Sequence record: MW879344.1
Reading direction: 5' to 3' (one strand)
DNA: 64,000 bases
In this document: positions 3,237 to 45,366 of the stretch, piece after piece
Numbering within the stretch: the stretch's first letter is position 1
How the letters are laid out: every line of letters begins with the position of its first letter
Position numbers and translations under genes: made by a program
The notes under the pieces: model-generated
Seen by the model: the letters and a program-made list of their open reading frames with translations, nothing else
Database searches by the model: none
Told to the model about the DNA's origin: nothing

Positions 3237-3514
3237 TGAATATCCGTCCAGTATATAATCATATTATTGCAAAGAAATATGTAAATGAACCAAAAAGTGC
3301 AGGTGGTATTTTACTTACAGCTAGTGGAGAGGATGAATCAACTCATGCTGAAGTAATATCTATTGGTAGTGCTTATAAAGGTGATATTAAAGTTGGTGAT
3401 ATTGTTTCTTACCTTGATGATAAACGTGTTCATATTGAAAAAATTGAAAATGAATATCTATTAATCATGCCAGAAGATTGTGTTCTGGCGGTAATTGAAA
3501 AAGAAGGCGAATAA
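3236..3514 (+). CDS. groES: GroES/Cpn10 co-chaperonin
   Basis: IRPVYNHIIAK...SAGGILL...EVISIG...IKVGDIV...YLLIMPEDCVLAVI. Confidence 0.85.
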   Translation: MNIRPVYNHIIAKKYVNEPKSAGGILLTASGEDESTHAEVISIGSAYKGDIKVGDIVSYLDDKRVHIEKIENEYLLIMPEDCVLAVIEKEGE

Positions 3515-3515
3515 C

Positions 3516-4778
3516 ATGCATAAGGCGTTGGTAGAATTACAAGCTCGTGGTCTAATTAATCAAAGTACTGAACTTTCAGTATTATCTTCTCTACTTGAGA
3601 AGGGTTCTTCAGTGTATTGTGGTTTTGATCCAACGGCTGACTCATTGCATATTGGTAGTCTTCTACCTCTCATGACTCTGAAAGTCCTTAAAGATCACGG
3701 AGTTCATGTTATTGCACTTGTTGGTGGGGCAACTGGTCGTATTGGCGATCCAAGCTTTAAAGCACAAGAACGGCAAATGCTAACTGAAGAAATGGTAGAC
3801 CGAAATATTGCGGGAATTACTTCTGTAATTCGCAAATTTCTTGGTTCAGATACATTAATTGTGAATAATCACGATTGGACAAAAGACATTTCAGTACTTG
3901 ATTTCTTGCGAATATACGGTAAATGCTTTACTGTTAATAACATGATTTCTAAAGAAGCAGTTCGTTCTCGCATTGAACGACCAGATCAAGGAATTTCATT
4001 TACTGAATTTACTTATCCAATTCTTCAAGGAATGGATTTTGAACATCTATTTAATATTGGATGTTCTATTCAAATTGGTGGTTCAGACCAATGGGGTAAT
4101 ATGATTGCTGGAACTGACTTGATCCACAAGATGCACGGTAATGATGCTGAAGTGGGGGTTATTACTTTACCCCTACTATTAAAATCGGATGGTACTAAAT
4201 TCGGTAAATCAGAATCTGGAACTGTATGGTTAAGTCCTAATCATACTTCTGCATATCACATGTATCAATTCTGGTTGAATGTTACGGATGATGAAATGAT
4301 TACCATGTACCAGTACTTTAAACCAATGTCATTTTCGGTCGATGTTGTAAAAACAGAAATGGAACAAAACGTAGTACTAATGAAGAAACAATTTGCTTAT
4401 AGCATGACTGCATTAGTTCATGGTACTGATAAAGCCGATCAAGCATATAAAGTTAGTCAATTCTTGTTCGGTGCAAAAATTGAACTTGATATTGAGTCAA
4501 TTAATATGATGGTGGATTCTGGTATGGAATCGACTACAATTATTGAACCAATAGGATTGATTTCACTATTGGTCGAAACTGGTCTAGCATCGTCTAATAA
4601 AATGGCTCGTGAGTTCATTACTAATGGTGCCGCTAAGATTAATGGTCGCAAAATTAATGAGTTCTACGATCCAGTACAATATGAATTTACTGAAGATGTT
4701 GATATATATGACAACCGTTATTTTGTTCTACAACGTGGTCGTGATAATTTTGTAATTATTCGAAATGGGAGGATTTAA
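3516..4778 (+). CDS. tyrS: Tyrosyl-tRNA synthetase
   Basis: YCGFDPTADSLHIGS (HIGH), ALVGGATGRIGDPS, QIGGSDQWGN, KFGKSE (KMSKS), C-terminal S4-like domain; start at ATG 3516. Confidence 0.95.
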   Translation: MHKALVELQARGLINQSTELSVLSSLLEKGSSVYCGFDPTADSLHIGSLLPLMTLKVLKDHGVHVIALVGGATGRIGDPSFKAQERQMLTEEMVDRNIAGITSVIRKFLGSDTLIVNNHDWTKDISVLDFLRIYGKCFTVNNMISKEAVRSRIERPDQGISFTEFTYPILQGMDFEHLFNIGCSIQIGGSDQWGNMIAGTDLIHKMHGNDAEVGVITLPLLLKSDGTKFGKSESGTVWLSPNHTSAYHMYQFWLNVTDDEMITMYQYFKPMSFSVDVVKTEMEQNVVLMKKQFAYSMTALVHGTDKADQAYKVSQFLFGAKIELDIESINMMVDSGMESTTIIEPIGLISLLVETGLASSNKMAREFITNGAAKINGRKINEFYDPVQYEFTEDVDIYDNRYFVLQRGRDNFVIIRNGRI

Positions 4779-26125: not shown

Positions 26126-27370
26126 ATGAAAAATAATCACCTAGACAATTTAATTGTTAGACACCTTGCAGGTTCACAAGCTTATGGCACAAGTACACCT
26201 ACATCAGATACTGACTATAGAGGTATTTTTGTTGCTGATAAAGAATTCATCATTACTCCATTCTTTAAAGTTAATGAAGTTAATGATGCATCCGAAGAAG
26301 ATACTAAGTATTATGAACTTAACAACTATATGCAACTTTATTTGACTGCTAATCCAAATATTCTTGAATCTCTTTGGGTAGATGAGTCTGATATTGTTTT
26401 TAAAAATGAAATGTATGATCATCTTCGTTCTGCTCGTACTGAACTTCTATCCACAAAAATTGCATTTACATACACTGGCTATGCTCATAACCAAGCGAAA
26501 CGTATGAAAAATCACCACACATGGATGGAAAAAGAGCGTACTGGTGTTCGTATTTTACAAGAACTAATTGACCAATATCCATGCGAACAAATGGTTCAAT
26601 GGATTGGCGATTCCTTCCCATCTTATATTATGAATCTAGTTAATCTAGAAAAAGCTCGTGGTGTTTGGATTAAAGGTATTATTGATTTTGAAAAATTTAT
26701 GCGTAATGCTTCATTGCAAATGCTAAGTACTAATCCATTAAAACAATACCACTTTGTAAAATTAGTACATAACTATTTTGACCACCAAGTACTTGATCGT
26801 GATTTTAATATTCTAAATTATAATCATGGATACCAACTTGTTCCTTATGGAGATAACATTTTTGGTCTTGTTGAGCGGGAAGGTTCTAAAACTATTAATG
26901 ATGATGGTAGTATTCATCGTATTGATACTTCAAATCTTACACTACAAGAGGTGAAAGAAACACCTAAATTGATCGTTAAATTCAACAAGGATGAATATGA
27001 GAAAAGTTCTGACAATCGTCACAACTATCATCATTGGAAGGAAAATCGTAATGAAGCTCGTTCTGAACTAGAACAGTTAAATGGTTATGATACCAAACAT
27101 GCAATGCACGTTGTTCGTCTACTACGTACTGCTGAAGAAGCCTTAGAAACTGGTGAAATTCATGTTAAACGACCTGATGCAGCAGAACTTTTAGCTATCC
27201 GAAATGGTGCGTGGAGTTATGACGAAATGATGCAGTACTGGAATGAAAAAGACCAGTATATTCGTGAAGTACTATATAAACAATCAGATTTACCAAAAAA
27301 TCCCGATATTCATAAAGCAGCACAGCTACTTATTGAACTTCGTGAAATTCAATGGTATGGGAAAAAATAA
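26126..27370 (+). CDS. RlaP/NrdC.11-like nucleotidyltransferase
   Basis: LAGSQAYGTSTPTSDTDYRGIF, NPNILESLW, YDTKHAMHVVRLL...L..IRNG. Confidence 0.75.
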   Translation: MKNNHLDNLIVRHLAGSQAYGTSTPTSDTDYRGIFVADKEFIITPFFKVNEVNDASEEDTKYYELNNYMQLYLTANPNILESLWVDESDIVFKNEMYDHLRSARTELLSTKIAFTYTGYAHNQAKRMKNHHTWMEKERTGVRILQELIDQYPCEQMVQWIGDSFPSYIMNLVNLEKARGVWIKGIIDFEKFMRNASLQMLSTNPLKQYHFVKLVHNYFDHQVLDRDFNILNYNHGYQLVPYGDNIFGLVEREGSKTINDDGSIHRIDTSNLTLQEVKETPKLIVKFNKDEYEKSSDNRHNYHHWKENRNEARSELEQLNGYDTKHAMHVVRLLRTAEEALETGEIHVKRPDAAELLAIRNGAWSYDEMMQYWNEKDQYIREVLYKQSDLPKNPDIHKAAQLLIELREIQWYGKK

Positions 27371-29772: not shown

Positions 29773-30138
29773 ATGTTAGAATTTATTAAGTTATACAAAT
29801 GGCCTATCGGGTTAGCAGCATTCTTACTATACACAGTACTAATGCTATTTTCTGGCTGGCAAGTACATACCTATTATGTTGGTTATCAACAAAATATTGA
29901 ACAAAAAATAGAAAAGATAGTAGATAATGGAATTAGAAATTATCAACAAAATCAAGCTAAGGGTCTTGAAGATACAAAATCATTATTAGATAATGCTAGA
30001 GTTAATACAATTATTAAAGAACCAACAATAATAAACCGACCAATATATATGCAACAATGTATGGATCAAGCTGGTGTAGATTTGTTGAAACAATATAAAT
30101 TGGACTCTAAAGCAGCAATAGAAGGAACTAAAAAATGA
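29773..30138 (+). CDS. Putative inner-membrane spanin (Rz-like)
   Basis: N-terminal TM helix plus helical periplasmic domain; overlaps a lipoprotein gene; follows a TAAATA motif. Confidence 0.6.
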   Translation: MLEFIKLYKWPIGLAAFLLYTVLMLFSGWQVHTYYVGYQQNIEQKIEKIVDNGIRNYQQNQAKGLEDTKSLLDNARVNTIIKEPTIINRPIYMQQCMDQAGVDLLKQYKLDSKAAIEGTKK

Positions 30139-30446
30139 GAAAAATAAAATTATTCTTAATGGTTCTTGTTCTACTAATGACTGTACTTTTAAGTGCATGT
30201 AGTACGATTCCGGTTCAAACTAAACCTATTATAGATCAGCAATCATTACTTAAAAAATGTACTACTGATACACCATTACCTACCCAATTTGTCCTTGACG
30301 AAAAAGGTCAACCAGTGTATACTGGACAGGAATTATACAAAACGCTTCGTGACTGGCAGACAGTTTACAATGACTGTGCGAGTACACATAATAAGCTAGT
30401 TGATACAATCAACGGGCTACAAGAGATGAAAGAAGTTAAGAAATAA
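30135..30446 (+). CDS. Putative outer-membrane spanin (Rz1-like lipoprotein)
   Basis: LLSAC lipobox; LLKKC..PLP...W..VYNDCASTHNKLV. Confidence 0.65.
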   Translation: MRKIKLFLMVLVLLMTVLLSACSTIPVQTKPIIDQQSLLKKCTTDTPLPTQFVLDEKGQPVYTGQELYKTLRDWQTVYNDCASTHNKLVDTINGLQEMKEVKK

Positions 30447-30917: not shown

Positions 30918-31175
30918 ATGAACGATGTATATTATCGTATTATCCGTTCATACGAGGATGATGAACTACTTCGAGTAGTAACTATGCAAGATTTTGATGA
31001 ATATGATTATGACCATAGTCGTTTTCTATGTGCTAAAGGAACAAATGAACGTTTACAATTTAGTACTGAAGAAAAAGCAATCAAATTCTTAAATGATAAT
31101 ATCAATCTAGAAAATATTGATCCAGAGTTTCGGGTAAAGACTCAGAATTATAATGACAAATTCTATAAAGATTGA
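30918..31175 (+). CDS. Hypothetical protein
   Basis: SD gagg; start moved to ATG 30918. Confidence 0.65.
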   Translation: MNDVYYRIIRSYEDDELLRVVTMQDFDEYDYDHSRFLCAKGTNERLQFSTEEKAIKFLNDNINLENIDPEFRVKTQNYNDKFYKD

Positions 31176-31180
31176 AATAA

Positions 31181-31210
31181 GTGAAACGCATTAAAAAAAT
31201 GTGGTATAAT
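31181..31210 (+). promoter_or_regulatory. Promoter of the candidate large ncRNA
   Basis: GTGAAAC...TGGTATAAT, 18-bp spacer; same class as 39006, 45372 and 61094. Confidence 0.65.
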
Positions 31211-31216
31211 ATGTAT

Positions 31217-31681
31217 GAAGACCTGAAAAGGTACTTCATACAACTCTGATTGATCCGTTTTACGGAATAGTTTAAGCCTGATCTCGTTGAAAATGTAAAC
31301 AGCAGATGAGTAGTTCAATCAGTACGAGTGCAAAAGAAACCCGTTAGGAGATGGCATAGTTTGTACCACCCACGGCAATGCGGCACTATAAATACGTCCT
31401 TGATATGAACGTACTAGATAGACATATGAGATGCATACTCACCTATTAAAAGGGAGATATTCTACGGAATATCAATAGTATTTGTTGCTGAATTAGCGAG
31501 TACTATATGCGAAGGAATGAGAAATCTTCGACCGTTGTATGCGACTGTAGTAACTGGAAACCGGACAACCCGCCAGTGTAGCTACAAATATTAGACAATA
31601 TAGATCCGTCTAAAATTTGAGTTAATCTACAAATTCAGAGGTAAGACTACCACCGTCAGATATTATTCTGACTTTTTTTTT
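31217..31681 (+). ncRNA. Candidate large structured ncRNA (~465 nt), family not recognised
   Basis: No ORF of 60 aa or more; own promoter and terminator; many helices with GAAA, GCAA and cUACGg tetraloops; long-range pairing ctgattga/tcaatcag; G-U pairs on + strand. Confidence 0.65.
31655..31681 (+). terminator. Rho-independent terminator
   Basis: gtcaga-tattat-tctgac + 9 T. Confidence 0.75.
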
Positions 31682-31833
31682 CGTTCCCCTTTTGTGGGGG
31701 GATGCAAATGGATCAACAAACCCCGTCAGTATAATAGTATTGAACGTACTTAAATACATTGATAATGAATGGAAATTATTCGAGTTCGTCAGAACGAGAA
31801 GAATTGAACATTCTTGACTAACGGAGTTAGGCA

Positions 31834-32208
31834 ATGACCCTTTCAGAAAACAAGTACTTCGAACAGATTATGACAAAGTACTTTTTAATATTAATTGAGA
31901 AAGACCTGTATCAATACAGGGGAAATACATTATTCATAGATAAATCATCTCAGGATGATAGAACTCTTGGCATTTATAATGCTATGTGTGATATGGCATA
32001 TATTGGTGAAAATATTGTATGTGTTAATTTTGATAAAGCATTTCCAATTAAACACTTGGATAAACTGCACTTTTTTATTGGAAATAATGCATATTACTTA
32101 AATCCAGTGCCATGTGATTTTTTGTTTATTTTTGACGCAGTAAAAAATCGTGAAGAATTAAATAAAATCATTAATTTTTACAATCCTAAATTTATTTTTT
32201 ACTGCTAG
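31834..32208 (+). CDS. Hypothetical protein
   Basis: SD ggag; 124 aa; TAAATA at 31751. Confidence 0.55.
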   Translation: MTLSENKYFEQIMTKYFLILIEKDLYQYRGNTLFIDKSSQDDRTLGIYNAMCDMAYIGENIVCVNFDKAFPIKHLDKLHFFIGNNAYYLNPVPCDFLFIFDAVKNREELNKIINFYNPKFIFYC

Positions 32209-37700: not shown

Positions 37701-38960
37701 ATGAAAATGGCAGAACTGATTAAAGAAGGTCGTAAACTGGTTACCATTCGCCGCATTAATGCGATTAACCCGATTCCAAATGCTGATGCAATTGAAGTTG
37801 CAACAGTTGATGGCTGGAATGTTGTCACTAAAAAAGGTGAATTCTCTGAAACCAATTTTTGCGTATTCTTTGAAATTGATTCATTCCTACCAGCAGATAA
37901 CCCAATTTTTGGTTTCCTTCTGCGTAATGGAACCAAAACTGATGAAGCGGGTGTAGAGCGTATTCGCCTCCGTACTGTAAAACTTCGTCAGCAAATTTCT
38001 CAAGGGCTGGCACTTCCTATTGATATTATCAATAAAGATATGATCAATGCATTTGCTGAAGCTATTTGTATTAAAAGTACTGATGATTTTGAACGTTTTT
38101 CTGAAGTACTCCGTACTCTTGAAGAAAGTCGTGATGGTATTGAACAGTTCTTCAATGTAACTAAGTACGAGCGTCCAGATGAGCGACAGGGTGGTGGTGC
38201 GAACCGTGCAAAAACAGCAGGTAACTTCCCTCTGGTAATTCCAAAAACTGATGAAGACCGTGTTCAGAATATTTTTGGAAAATTCAGTCAAACTATGAAG
38301 GGTATTCCATTCCGCAAATCTTTAAAACTTGATGGCTCTAGTCAGACTATTGCATATTTCAATAATCCAGATTTCTTTGTGGATAAAGTTGATGAAGAAG
38401 TTGTAGAATGGAATGAAGAAACCCAAGAACTGACAGTTGTTGAAGTTAAACCATATCCGTTCCAGTGGGAAAGTGCACAGATTGTTGTTTGCTCTCGCAA
38501 CCTTGCATTGAAGTTTGATGAATCTGCGGCATTCTGGAAAGCAGCATTGAAAGATGATATTCCAGCACGTCTTAAAAAGTACTGTGAAGATCATGATCGT
38601 CAGCTTGCATTGCAGGGTGAATGTATGGGACCTGGTATTCAAGGAAACCGTGAAGGTTTATCTGAACATGAGTTCTTCTGCTTCCGTATTTGGGATGTAG
38701 ATGCACAGAATTTCCTTGATGATGCAGAGTTCTTTGAAGTAACTGCTATTCTTGGCATCAATGTTGTTCCACAGGGTGATATTGTATATTTCTTTGATGT
38801 ATACAGTACTATTCAGGAAGCACTTAATAGTGCAGAACATGCAAGTATTGTTCATCCTATTGCAGAAGGTGACGTATACAAAAGTACTGAAAAGGTGAAT
38901 GGACAAACTATCCACTTTAAAGTAATTAACAATAAGTTCCTAATGAAATGTGAAGACTAA
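37701..38960 (+). CDS. RNA ligase, DRB0094/Rnl5-type
   Basis: N-terminal OB-like RKLVTIRRI...IPNADAIEVATVDGWNVV; LKLDGSS (motif I KxDG); LALQGECMG; AEGDVYK; FKVINNKFL. Confidence 0.88.
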   Translation: MKMAELIKEGRKLVTIRRINAINPIPNADAIEVATVDGWNVVTKKGEFSETNFCVFFEIDSFLPADNPIFGFLLRNGTKTDEAGVERIRLRTVKLRQQISQGLALPIDIINKDMINAFAEAICIKSTDDFERFSEVLRTLEESRDGIEQFFNVTKYERPDERQGGGANRAKTAGNFPLVIPKTDEDRVQNIFGKFSQTMKGIPFRKSLKLDGSSQTIAYFNNPDFFVDKVDEEVVEWNEETQELTVVEVKPYPFQWESAQIVVCSRNLALKFDESAAFWKAALKDDIPARLKKYCEDHDRQLALQGECMGPGIQGNREGLSEHEFFCFRIWDVDAQNFLDDAEFFEVTAILGINVVPQGDIVYFFDVYSTIQEALNSAEHASIVHPIAEGDVYKSTEKVNGQTIHFKVINNKFLMKCED

Positions 38961-38969
38961 AATTTGTAC

Positions 38970-38993
38970 AGCAGCTTGAAAAAGCTGCTTTTT
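38970..38993 (+). terminator. Rho-independent terminator
   Basis: agcagctt-gaaa-aagctgct + T run. Confidence 0.8.
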
Positions 38994-39005
38994 AAGTAAA
39001 AAAAA

Positions 39006-39035
39006 TTGAAACGCCACAAAATATTGTGGTATAAT
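39006..39035 (+). promoter_or_regulatory. Promoter, 18-bp-spacer class
   Basis: TTGAAAC...TGGTATAAT. Confidence 0.65.
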
Positions 39036-39042
39036 ATACGAC

Positions 39043-39330
39043 ATGGAGAAGGTGCTTATGACTAAGCAAGAATATCTAGCCAATCTACAGGTTGGTGATG
39101 TAGTGAAACGTGGTATGCATGGTGCGGGTTTTATCACCGATGGTGAAGATGCCGAGATTGTTCATATCAATGAATCTACCATTTGGGTTGATGAATCTAT
39201 GGAAGAAGCCAGTGATTATAAGCGTGACAGTGTATATGCATATGATCGCCGGACAGGAAAACAAACAGAGTCAACGTTTGGGTTCTTTAAAACCATTGAA
39301 TTGCCTGATTGGGAAGCACCTGATCAATAA
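39043..39330 (+). CDS. Hypothetical protein
   Basis: 95 aa; the start may be the downstream ATG (MTKQE). Confidence 0.55.
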   Translation: MEKVLMTKQEYLANLQVGDVVKRGMHGAGFITDGEDAEIVHINESTIWVDESMEEASDYKRDSVYAYDRRTGKQTESTFGFFKTIELPDWEAPDQ

Positions 39331-39382
39331 GAGTTAAGAAGTGAGTCAACAAAAATTTAATCCATTTCTGAGGAAAACAAAT

Positions 39383-40909
39383 ATGTCAGCATTTAAAAAC
39401 GCAGTAAACAACATGAATACACCAGCATCAAGCAACCGTTCTACAACTGCCAACGGTGGTGCTTCATTGAAAAGTTCATTAAATCCACTTGTGGATATGT
39501 TCTTCATGATCGGTTCTCTACGTAACAAAGACCTTGGTCAGTACAAAGCACAGTTCGACGCTGCGTATACAGCTAACCCAACGTTAGCTCTACAAATGAT
39601 TCTTTGGGCACGTGATGTTCGTGGTGGTGCAGGTGAACGTAATACACCACGTGAACTTTTGAAGTATTTGGAAGTTAAACATCCAGAAGATGTTCTACGT
39701 GTAATTCCAGTACTTGCAGAATTCGGTCGTTGGGATGATCTGTTGATCTTTAAAACTAAAGCTGCGAAAGCAGTTGCTTATGAAAAGATTGCAGAAGCTT
39801 TAAAAACTGGCAACGGTCTTTGTGCAAAATGGATGCCACGCATCTATAAATTCAAGAAGAATGCACAAGGTGTGGTTAATATGTCTAGTACTGCTAACCA
39901 AAACCGTGCTGCGAACAACAAAATTGCACGTGAACTAATGTCTGTAATGGGTATTAATGAACGTCAGTACCGTAAACTTCTATCATCTATGAGCAACACT
40001 GTTGAACAGAAGATGTGTGCGAATGAATGGGAAGCAATTGACTATAACAAACTACCATCGGTAGCAAGTTCTCGTTATTTGCCAGCTTTCATGAAACACG
40101 ACGAAGGTCGTTACCGTGATTACTTAGCTTCTCTTGAAAAAGGCGAAGGTAAGGTTAACGCAGCCACGTTGTTCCCATACGATGTATTGAAGAATTTGGT
40201 AACTCGTTATGGTACTACCACAGCAGAACAGACTCGTCTAGGTATTGCACAGTGGGATGCATTGAACAATCTAATGGGTGATAACCGTATTCTACCAATG
40301 GTAGATACATCTGGCTCAATGGGTGTGGGTATCGCTGGTACTTCACTAACTGTTCAAGATGTAGCAGTATCACTTGGCTTGTATGTAAGTACAAAACAAA
40401 CTGGTGCTTTCAAGGATATGTGGTTGAACTTTAGTACCCGTCCAAAATTGAAAGTACTTCCACGTGGAGATATTAGTGTAAAAGCTAATGACTTGTACCG
40501 CAATCACGGTTCCGATTGGGATGGTAGTACAAACGTTGAAGCAGCATTTGATCTAGTATTGAGTACTGCGGTGAAGCAAAACGTTCCACAGGATGAAATG
40601 CCAAAAGTTCTAATGATCTTCAGTGACATGGAATTTAATGGTAGTGGTGGTCGTAACTGGAACAAAACAGCGTTCCAAACGGCTAAACAGAAGTTTGAAC
40701 GTGCTGGTTATGAGCTACCAATGGTAGTGTTCTGGAACCTAAACGCACGTGCTAACAACAATCCAGTTCGTTTCGATGAAGCTGGAACGGCGTTGGTAAG
40801 CGGTTTCAGTCCTAATGTAATTCCTGCGATTCTAAGCGGCAACGCAGTTGATCCAGTGAGTATTATGTTAGCTGCAATCGACACTCCACGCTACCGCGTG
40901 TTGGGTTAA
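39383..40909 (+). CDS. DUF2828-family protein (TROVE/Ro60-like helical domain + C-terminal vWA)
   Basis: WARDVRGGAGER, FGRWDDLL, AKWMPR, VEQKMCANEW..IDY..LPSVA, MVDTSGSM (MIDAS DxSxS), GSTN, IFSDMEF, FWNL, VSGFS; start moved to ATG 39383. Confidence 0.8.
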   Translation: MSAFKNAVNNMNTPASSNRSTTANGGASLKSSLNPLVDMFFMIGSLRNKDLGQYKAQFDAAYTANPTLALQMILWARDVRGGAGERNTPRELLKYLEVKHPEDVLRVIPVLAEFGRWDDLLIFKTKAAKAVAYEKIAEALKTGNGLCAKWMPRIYKFKKNAQGVVNMSSTANQNRAANNKIARELMSVMGINERQYRKLLSSMSNTVEQKMCANEWEAIDYNKLPSVASSRYLPAFMKHDEGRYRDYLASLEKGEGKVNAATLFPYDVLKNLVTRYGTTTAEQTRLGIAQWDALNNLMGDNRILPMVDTSGSMGVGIAGTSLTVQDVAVSLGLYVSTKQTGAFKDMWLNFSTRPKLKVLPRGDISVKANDLYRNHGSDWDGSTNVEAAFDLVLSTAVKQNVPQDEMPKVLMIFSDMEFNGSGGRNWNKTAFQTAKQKFERAGYELPMVVFWNLNARANNNPVRFDEAGTALVSGFSPNVIPAILSGNAVDPVSIMLAAIDTPRYRVLG

Positions 40910-44253: not shown

Positions 44254-45366
44254 ATGAAAAAATACATTGTAGGTGGTTTTGTACGCGATAAACTTCTTGG
44301 TCTTCAACCTAAAGATAAAGACTATGTACTTGTCGGAGCTAAACCGAAAGATATTGAATACCTAACTGGTATTGGTTATAAACAAGTTGGTGCCGATTTC
44401 CCTGTGTTCTTGTCTCCAGATGGTGATGAATATGCACTAGCTCGTATTGAACGAAAAACTGGTACTGGTTATGATGGATTTACTGTTCAAACTCAAGGTG
44501 TTACTCTTGAGCAAGATTTGTATCGTCGTGACCTTACCATTAATGCTATTGCATGGGACCCAATTACTAAGACTCATGTTGATCCATATAATGGTAAAGT
44601 AGATTTGCAGAACAAAGTACTAAAGCATGTATCTGAAGCATTTAAAGAAGATCCACTTCGTGTACTACGTCTTGCACGTTTTGCCGCACGTTATAGTACT
44701 TTCACTATACACGCAGATACTAATGTTATGGTAAAAGAAATGGTTAAGAATGGTGAAATAAATCATTTGACCAAAGAGCGTGTATATATTGAATTTGAAA
44801 AAGCACTATCTGAAGAAAAGCCTAGTATCTTTTTCAAGTACTTGAAAGATATTGGTGCGTTAAAAGTATTACTTCCAACATTCGAAGCTACGAATAAGGA
44901 ATTGGAACTTATTGATCATATTGCAATGAACAGTACTGAACAGTACCGTGAAGAATTCATTTGGTCTGTAATTTTGTCAAAAGCTACTCCTACAAAAGAT
45001 TATGTTGTTGGTGGGATAAAACTACCTGCACGTTTTGTTAAGTTCAGCAACTTTGTCAAATTGCATTCAGATGGTTTGATTAAATTCAGGAAGAAAAAAC
45101 CTGAAGGTATGGTTGAACTATTCACTGCAATGAATGTCAAAAACAACGGTGGTGAGGAATTCTTGTATAAAGTGGTAGAGTACTTTATCATTCGCCGTGA
45201 AATTGATATTGAGTTGGAAGATTTGATCATGAAAGTATATGATAAGTTCTATGATGCACCTGTTGGTAACATTGAAGAAATGGTAAAAACTGGTGCATTG
45301 GAGGCAGCCAATATCCGTACTCACATCAAGACAATTCAGGTTGATGAAATTAAGAAAATGTTCTGA
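44254..45366 (+). CDS. cca: tRNA nucleotidyltransferase (CCA-adding enzyme, class II)
   Basis: YIVGGFVRDKLLG...DKDYV, VGADFPVFL, EYALARIERK, DLYRRDLTINA, EDPLRVLRLARFAAR; no HD domain evident. Confidence 0.92.
   Translation: MKKYIVGGFVRDKLLGLQPKDKDYVLVGAKPKDIEYLTGIGYKQVGADFPVFLSPDGDEYALARIERKTGTGYDGFTVQTQGVTLEQDLYRRDLTINAIAWDPITKTHVDPYNGKVDLQNKVLKHVSEAFKEDPLRVLRLARFAARYSTFTIHADTNVMVKEMVKNGEINHLTKERVYIEFEKALSEEKPSIFFKYLKDIGALKVLLPTFEATNKELELIDHIAMNSTEQYREEFIWSVILSKATPTKDYVVGGIKLPARFVKFSNFVKLHSDGLIKFRKKKPEGMVELFTAMNVKNNGGEEFLYKVVEYFIIRREIDIELEDLIMKVYDKFYDAPVGNIEEMVKTGALEAANIRTHIKTIQVDEIKKMF

Follow-up and report, generated by a model that had tools for sequence, protein, structure and literature searches.

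The locus described here raises the question of what a phage genome encodes in a gap that is poor in open reading frames (ORFs). The window that was analyzed, i.e., the whole stretch of DNA, comprises 64,000 nucleotides (nt) of the genome of Erwinia phage pEa_SNUABM_49 (Eneladusvirus BF, 358 kb, MW879344.1), and window position 31150 corresponds to record position 93150. An earlier note, made from the letters alone, had proposed that positions 31217-31681 form a large, structured non-coding RNA with its own promoter and terminator, lying in such a gap. It was observed that no ORF of more than 51 amino acids (aa) overlapped 31176-31621 and that no coding sequence (CDS) was annotated between 31175 and 31834, so the ORF-poor gap is real. 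Homologous ORF-free gaps of 600-700 nt were found in jumbo phages of Yersinia, Cronobacter, Pectobacterium, Xanthomonas, Salmonella, Klebsiella, and Escherichia. In the distant phages, the match to the query was confined to the RNA part and the flanking genes were unmatched, which indicated that the RNA is more conserved than its flanks. The results given below demonstrated that the flagged gap encodes a real, structured RNA of roughly 0.5 kb on the + strand, and that this RNA belongs to a new, multi-copy structured RNA family that is absent from Rfam 15. In pEa_SNUABM_49 the family has five copies (types A to E), all on the + strand, and the RNA of the window is the "type B" member. Positions are those of the window unless the record is named, and all parts of the RNA and its promoter described below lie on the + strand.

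The folding energy of 31217-31681 was compared with that of shuffled sequences. The + strand fold reached -119 kcal/mol, compared with -96.7 +/- 5.1 kcal/mol for the shuffles (z = -4.45), and the - strand gave z = -2.29. A curated model of 97 pairs was 96.2% paired in 19 type-B orthologs, compared with 89.3% for shuffled and 35-45% for slid partners, and it contained 28 doubly changed pairs; the compensatory changes expected of a conserved RNA fold were thus present among the orthologs. In a model of the 3' region built on 39 paralogs, 91.3% of the cells were paired and 12 pairs changed on both sides. Across the three models, including that of the 5' domain described below, the slid-partner controls were 27-48% paired. 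Many of the pairs were G-U pairs, which would be A-C mismatches on the opposite strand. These numerous G-U pairs fix the + strand as the strand of the RNA, as the earlier note had read from the wobble pairs. About 100 bases of the RNA were invariant, mostly within junctions and loops.

The 5' domain (31246-31413) was defined by covariation in 36 paralogs. It consists of P1 (31246-53/31315-22), P1a inside P1 (31254-57/31263-66), P2 (31278-88/31298-305, with the loop GAAAAUGUA), P3 (31328-31/31383-86), P4 (31341-48/31370-75), P5 (31393-97/31409-13), and S2 (31310-12/31323-25). Together these helices were 89.7% paired, compared with 72.4% for shuffled and 27-45% for slid partners, and 27 of the 41 pairs changed on both sides. 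S2 was 100% paired (UA 26, AU 8, CG 2). Since the hairpin loop of S2 is the 3' strand of P1, S2 and P1 form an H-type pseudoknot. Covariation confirmed several elements that had been drawn from the single sequence, namely the 5' hairpin at 31217-37, ctgattga/tcaatcag with its inner tccg/cgga, and tgag/ctca. The proposed cg-GCAA-tg hairpin was unsupported and was replaced because its ACGG pairs with the CCGU of ACCCGUUAG, so that these bases form P4 with 31341-44. Variation in this domain was observed at two places. In minimal variants (a Hallingskeid-like contig, 6 copies), the 5' strand of P1 and P1a were absent, and the S2 hairpin was short-looped, with no pseudoknot. The extension of P4 (31347-31371) was filled by one of two interchangeable modules, either a short hairpin whose loop is CAUAGUUUGUA or about 40 nt of inserted sequence. 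The distribution of these modules followed neither paralog type nor genus, which suggests from the alignment that they may have been exchanged between copies.

The middle domain (31427-31530) varied between paralogs and was recognized from compensatory changes among the type-B orthologs. It comprises the hairpins 31427-30/31438-41, 31456-62/31467-73 (with a UACG loop), 31475-87/31494-506, and 31510-14/31526-30. The 3' core (31534-31631) follows, in which helix Hf (31534-38/31565-69) crosses both Hd (31546-50/31627-31) and He (31553-57/31573-77) and thereby forms a second pseudoknot. Hf, Hd, and He were each 100% paired in 39 paralogs, and 11 of their 15 pairs changed on both sides. The earlier note had missed both pseudoknots. 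Its hairpin gatattc-UACG-gaatatc and its helices tagtat..ttgct/agcga..gtacta, cgaag/cttcg, and actgg/ccagt, as well as the terminator stem, were borne out by covariation. The helix tgtagt/gctaca had to be redrawn, with the second CTACA (31627-31) as the partner of TGTAG; the first copy is degenerate in the 7t3 group. Similarly, cgg/ccg gave way to Hf, and ttagac/gtctaa and aatttg/caaatt could be kept at best as weak or unvarying helices. Types B and C carry an insert at 31582-31626, which in the window copy is bounded by the 8-nt direct repeat CTACAAAT (31582-89, 31627-34), and its hairpin (31591-96/31608-13) was only 67-78% paired. In types A, D, and E, the motif AUAUAGAUCCGUCUAAAAUUUGAG of this insert is found in the middle domain instead. 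Judged from the paralog sequences, a module has moved within the RNA.

The most conserved part of the unit lies at its 3' end. Box R1 (GACUACCACCGUCAG, 31645-31659) was present in all members. The 3' block (31686-31735), near-invariant in all paralogs, contains a C-run/G6 hairpin (31686-89/31696-99), GGGGGGAUG.AAAUG, box R2 (31718-29), and UAUAAU. All members end alike, with the C-run, a short loop, and GGGGGGAUG.AAAUG..UCAACAAAyCnyGUCAr, which in the window occupies 31686-31729, 3' of U9. It was observed that R1 and R2 covary so as to remain identical. Position 31650 equaled 31721 in 57 of 57 sequences (UU in 31 and CC in 26), position 31654 equaled 31724 in 57 of 57, and position 31653 equaled 31723 in 48 of 57. 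In phage RaK2, both boxes had changed, to CUUCAAG. A search of the RNA for a complementary third strand or internal guide for R1 or R2 yielded no consistent site, and an internal guide was rejected on this ground. The P4 strand AAACCCGUUAG (31337-47) resembles R2 (AAACCCCGUCAG). In a pattern scan built on the 3' block, the block was never found without the RNA body, so the block as an independent element was also rejected. In the 7t3 group and in type C, indels of one base interrupt the GGGGGGAUG... mini-frame. Since the indel of the 7t3 group shifts the frame, the 3' block does not encode a peptide.

We then considered the promoter and the extent of the unit. A promoter was recognized at 31181-31210, with a GTGAAAC box at -35, a spacer of 17-18 nt, and the extended -10 element TGgTATAAT (10 of 12 matches, TG present). 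The promoter proposed earlier was confirmed, as GTGAAA-18-TATAAT with an extended TG, and was kept across the family; ATGAAAC-N17-TGnTATAAT was found upstream of all 41 members examined. Elsewhere in the window, the motif occurred at 39000, 45382, and 61091. This promoter belongs to the "TGAAACG" class of RaK2-like phages such as CBB and GAP32 (TGAAAC(G), about 17 nt, TATAAT). The class is known from phage CBB as a divergent RpoD-like promoter with TGAAACG at -35, where it was reported mainly ahead of DNA-synthesis genes (PMC5259590). At the predicted +1, the minimum free energy fold placed a terminal hairpin (31217-31237), and the orthologs carried a hairpin of different sequence at the same place; in type A, a U-tract follows it. 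At the other end, the hairpin GUCAGA/UCUGAC followed by U9 (31655-31681, with a 6-bp stem at 31655-72) is a predicted intrinsic terminator, with GC pairs in the hairpin and the U-tract directly after it, and its stem showed one compensatory change from A-U to G-C. Nine terminator-like sites were scored in the region, compared with 1.5 expected. The terminator claimed in the earlier note thus stood as a hairpin with U9 that scores as intrinsic, but not as the end of the conserved unit, which runs about 55 nt beyond it, to about 31735. A terminator-like hairpin with a U-tract lay between R1 and the C-run in types B, C, and E. None was present in types A and D, which run on to the next + strand gene, so their 3' ends would need processing to give a discrete RNA.

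The comparison between genomes showed that the RNA is not a singleton, which the earlier note had not foreseen. A first clue to paralogy was that the best match of the homolog of phage 121Q in pEa_SNUABM_49 lay at 29.9 kb of the record, not at 93 kb; at 29.9 kb, too, there is an ORF-free gap, organized like that at 93 kb. The family was searched for by invariant-motif scans of IMG/VR, metagenomes, and 185,579 cellular genomes, and the matches were checked with a family hidden Markov model (HMM). At least 64 distinct full-length members were found, 40 of them below 93% identity. All members were on contigs of RaK2-like jumbo phages, namely Eneladus-, Mimas-, and Asteriusvirus, the 7t3/EJP2/Hallingskeid group, and RaK2/K64-1. 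The cellular genomes gave five pattern matches, all without an HMM match and hence due to chance, and presence of the family in cellular genomes was rejected. There are 4-6 paralogs per genome, and each paralogous RNA measures 490-570 nt. The family is defined by the promoter class, the P1/S2 pseudoknot, the P2 loop GAAAA(U)GUA, the P4 motifs ACCCGUyAG and CACGGCAAUGCGGC, the stretch CGACCGUUG...AACCCGC forming the Hf/Hd/He pseudoknot, and the boxes R1 and R2 around the C-run/G6 hairpin. The window copy carries every one of these features and matched the family HMM with 401 bits (E = 9e-121), HMM positions 22-518 corresponding to 31235-31735.

The five copies of pEa_SNUABM_49 are located at record positions 29,884-30,405 (A), 93,235-93,735 (B, window 31235-31735), 175,068-175,637 (E), 259,383-259,918 (C), and 336,336-336,815 (D). 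The gaps between them are 63, 82, 84, 77, and 52 kb, so the copies are over-dispersed relative to random placement (minimum-gap P = 0.006). In 121Q, four copies were found at 90.3, 192.8, 247.5, and 326.6 kb (minimum-gap P = 0.05). Each paralog type is syntenic across genera. The duplications are therefore old, and the even spacing is in effect one observation. Two further observations concern single copies. In Klebsiella phage RaK2, the two copies (at about 191.3 kb and 279.6 kb) have different 5' halves and are identical over the last ~330 nt and the downstream flank, a pattern that points to recent gene conversion or duplication between paralogs. Copy D of pEa_SNUABM_49 (336336-336815) was only 87% identical to that of Serratia phage BF (335300-335799), over positions 51-500. 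No TGnTATAAT can be recognized immediately ahead of copy D, and a CDS is annotated that extends into its beginning. The original 5' end of this copy may have been exchanged for another sequence.

No known RNA family could be assigned, in line with the earlier note. Rfam 15, whose families include GOLLD, ROOL, RNase P, tmRNA, group I and II introns, Y RNA/YrlA, 6S, HEARO, and small ribozymes, gave no match at the gathering score in the whole window and none at E<=10 in 31100-31900. Over 12 paralog loci, only scattered chance matches were obtained, all outside the element. ARAGORN found no tRNA or tmRNA gene in the window. A group I intron was rejected because the RNA has its own promoter at the 5' end, the flanking ORFs are complete and unrelated between paralogs, Rfam was empty, and the strand order f, d, e, f', e', d' misfits P3/P7/P3'/P8/P7'. 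Other likenesses, including strings resembling RNase P CR-IV/V, the group I "AGACUA", and a hammerhead-like "GAUGAG", failed in Rfam or in helix order. Searches of the literature on jumbo-phage non-coding RNAs, phAPEC6, Asteriusvirus transcriptomes, and GAP32 origins gave no account of the element.

It was also considered whether the locus is no RNA gene at all, and instead a small protein gene or a DNA-level element such as a set of protein-binding sites. In favor of coding, an ORF of 23-46 aa (MRRNEKSSTVVCDCSNWKPDNPP...) spans the 3' core in many type-B copies, and several GenBank records (LT960552, PQ464595, MK773491, and PQ464590) list small CDSs over homologous loci, on either strand and 29-97 aa long, as "hypothetical protein". 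However, 7t3, EJP2, and Hallingskeid lack the start codon of this ORF, and in type A the same conserved bases include a TAG in frame. Between phages with about 72% identity overall, none of the three codon positions varied in the 3' core, so the synonymous-site variation of a protein gene is missing. A conserved small ORF, like the GGGGGGAUG... peptide, was rejected on the basis of the unconserved start, the in-frame stop, the lack of third-position variation, and the frame-shifting indels. The annotated CDSs differ from record to record and, judged by this comparison, are probably mis-annotations. Covariation with G-U pairs specific to the + strand argues against both a coding and a DNA-only element. 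We consider such an explanation very improbable, and the non-coding nature proposed in the earlier note was upheld.

What, then, does the RNA do? The reading that we favor, to which we give about even chances, is a stand-alone, trans-acting structured RNA, either the scaffold of a ribonucleoprotein (RNP) or a ribozyme. In this reading, the phage-specific promoter (TGAAAC box and extended -10) drives a + strand transcript, which folds into the 5' domain (P1-P5 with the P1/S2 pseudoknot), the variable middle domain, and the pseudoknotted 3' core. For most transcripts, U9 would be the 3' end, so that the RNA would measure about 465 nt, and read-through or processing at R1/R2 might set alternative 3' ends. 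As a stable RNA, it would serve in trans as an RNP scaffold or a ribozyme rather than as the leader of the next gene. A stand-alone unit is supported by the context of copy E and by the downstream genes. Copy E has minus-strand genes on both sides and its own terminator, followed by a bidirectional terminator. The proteins encoded downstream of the different paralog types have no relation to one another (a DNA methylase, an ADP-ribosylglycohydrolase, and unknowns), and the downstream genes vary even among type-B orthologs, in which the RNA is still at least 72% identical. Since each paralog has been kept separately since before the genera split, the copies are probably specialized and do not serve dosage only. 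Several points weigh against this reading. The +1, the 3' ends, and the stability of the RNA are model-based predictions across the phage group. Types A and D, with no terminator before the next + strand gene, would be leaders unless processed, and in type B the most conserved 3' block sits 3' of the terminator, an unexpected order if a stand-alone RNA is terminated there. Neither a partner protein nor a ligand or catalytic motif was identified for the RNA. Finally, the stand-alone model explains neither why R1 and R2 covary in identity nor why the copies are evenly spaced in the genome.

The last two features are those that a replication-origin primer RNA best explains, together with the G6 block. 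In this alternative, which we regard as possible if unlikely, the five elements would be RNA-primed origins, comparable to ColE1 RNA II or to R-loops from the middle promoters at T4 oriF/oriG. At each of them, the promoter would make a structured pre-primer, and the RNA of about 450 nt would form a persistent RNA-DNA hybrid at the C-run/G6-R2 block and be processed to prime DNA synthesis. Since the sequence of R1 equals that of R2, the R1 segment of the RNA would be able to hybridize to the R2 template strand, and R1 and the G6 run would anchor an R-loop there. ColE1 RNA II is a folded pre-primer, and T4 has several origins per genome that are transcribed from non-early promoters. The elements resemble ColE1 RNA II and T4 oriF/oriG in that a promoter precedes a G/C-run site by about 0.5 kb. 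They have no sequence relation to these systems, their conserved fold is far more elaborate than that of the T4 origins, and the hybrid, RNase H processing, and DNA synthesis are hypothetical here. The invariant G6 run beside the C-run after an RNA body of about 450 nt, the even spread of the five copies on one strand, and the maintenance of R1 = R2 even in RaK2 are all consistent with priming. So is the fact that the unit occurs irrespective of whether it has a terminator or is followed by a + strand gene. The promoter class fits as well, being the one reported mainly ahead of DNA-synthesis genes in CBB (PMC5259590). On the other hand, no sign change of GC skew was found at the element, although the skew is uniformly positive and hence uninformative on an origin, and the synteny of the positions reduces the spacing to one observation. 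Among T4-type origin transcripts, none is known to need a conserved, pseudoknotted fold of 450 nt, and the link to DNA synthesis appears circumstantial throughout. In a reading related to the origin model, the RNA may be a new self-processing ribozyme with its cleavage sites in the two identical boxes.

A cis-acting leader is likewise doubtful. Here the RNA would be the 5' part of the downstream operon transcript and would control conditional termination, processive antitermination (as HK022 put/EAR), processing, or translation, with R1, the terminator, the C-run/G-run pair, and R2 as its expression platform. Types A and D, which reach the next + strand gene directly, are consistent with a leader, and in types B, C, and E the terminator inside the unit is followed by conserved sequence in which G6 could pair either with the upstream C-run or with the CCCC of R2. 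In addition, the P4 strand CCGUUAG is complementary to CUAACGG (31818-24), located at the next gene's ribosome-binding site. However, copy E, flanked by opposite-strand genes, means that the family cannot be only a leader; different paralogs precede unrelated genes, and even type-B orthologs differ in the gene that follows, which also led us to reject riboswitch-like control of a common pathway; and no partner for alternative pairing of R1 or R2 was consistently found. The antiterminator RNAs of HK022 put/EAR are 70-120 nt long with two stem-loops. The RNA of the window shares with them a promoter-proximal, structured position upstream of a terminator, but it is about 450-520 nt long with two pseudoknots, and one copy of the family lacks downstream genes on the same strand. 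Still less probable is a selfish or formerly mobile RNA, i.e., a self-processing ribozyme or a nuclease guide or scaffold (omega-RNA/reRNA of IscB/TnpB-like systems), with R1 and R2 as cleavage or recombination boxes. Multiple dispersed copies with their own promoters, modules swapped between paralogs (P4 inserts independent of type, a motif moved between domains), the identical 3' halves of the two RaK2 copies as expected of gene conversion, and the repeat CTACAAAT flanking the type-B insert would fit mobility. Against it, the copies have no consistent neighbor encoding a nuclease, reverse transcriptase, or transposase, Rfam gave no match to an intron or a self-cleaving ribozyme, and an internal guide complementary to R1 or R2 was not found. 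The paralogs are, moreover, syntenic and conserved across genera, so they have not moved recently.

Returning to the stand-alone RNA, the nearest known relatives in kind are GOLLD and ROOL, which are also several hundred nt long, with many covarying helices and pseudoknots, phage-borne, without a fixed neighbor gene, and of unknown function. Unlike them, the RNA described here has no Rfam 15 match, is present in each genome as 4-6 diverged paralogs with separate promoters, carries the 3' twin-box module, and is confined to RaK2-like jumbo myoviruses of Enterobacterales and relatives. In phage PA5oct, RNA sequencing revealed ncRNA002, a "putative lncRNA" of 451 nt that makes up 1-5% of phage reads and lies in an ORF-free gap (PMC7318152). 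Both are non-coding RNAs of about 450 nt in a jumbo phage, PA5oct being distantly related to the RaK2 group; there the evidence is RNA sequencing. Homology was rejected, as blastn, nhmmer, and invariant-motif checks were all empty, and ncRNA002 is an analogue, not a homolog.

The earlier note had further suggested a Ro60-like protein, an RNA ligase, and RNA end-modifying enzymes as partners. Using Pfam, we identified a tyrosyl-tRNA synthetase (3495-4778), an RlaP nucleotidyltransferase (26126-27370), an RNA ligase (37701-38960), a DUF2828/DUF7788 protein (39341-40909), which is the gene that had been called Ro60-like, and a CCA-adding/poly(A) polymerase-family enzyme (44254-45366). These five genes form a loose RNA-repair neighborhood around the RNA. 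The evidence for a partnership is co-residence only; the DUF2828/DUF7788 gene is 8 kb away, and the other four copies lie elsewhere. A comparison of the DUF2828 protein with PDB sequences, made to look for kinship with Ro60, gave no match. Bacterial Y RNAs (YrlA/YrlB) are about 100-200 nt long, adjoin rsr, carry a tRNA-like module, and are bound by Ro60/Rsr, through a stem in which their 5' and 3' ends pair. The phage resembles such systems in encoding the DUF2828/DUF7788 protein and RNA repair enzymes, and jumbo phages with ROT/TROVE proteins have been noted (PMC7824862). Besides the distance of 8 kb, the features of a Y RNA were not found: ARAGORN detected no tRNA-like domain, the 5' and 3' ends showed no covarying pairing, and Rfam was empty. 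Unlike Y RNAs, the other four copies are tens of kilobases from the DUF2828/DUF7788 gene. A second non-coding RNA ahead of the DUF2828 gene (38960-39341) was rejected, since the region looks like a small ORF by eye, gave z = -1.6, and was empty in Rfam. Downstream of the RNA, the CUAACGG element is part of a hairpin that includes GGAG, the ribosome-binding site for the following gene (31834-32208), and it is the exact complement of 31341-47 in P4. The motif CCGTYAG occurs nine times in the window, and three + strand occurrences are inside the RNA.

Large, intricately folded RNAs of bacteria and phages are rare, and most are ribozymes, RNP cores, or self-assembling particles. The present family is unusual in that its 4-6 diverged paralogs per genome predate the split of the Eneladus-, Mimas-, Asteriusvirus, and RaK2 lineages and have been maintained ever since. 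The even spacing of the copies and a pair of boxes that co-evolve to stay identical are unusual as well. The family also occurs in the coliphages 121Q, PBECO4, phAPEC6, G17, and Sharanji (on K-12 MG1655). Since these phages grow on laboratory E. coli, the expression, partners, and structure of the RNA and any role in replication or RNA metabolism are directly testable. If the origin reading were true, an arrangement like that of ColE1 RNA II would have been multiplied and evenly spaced around a 358-kb phage genome.

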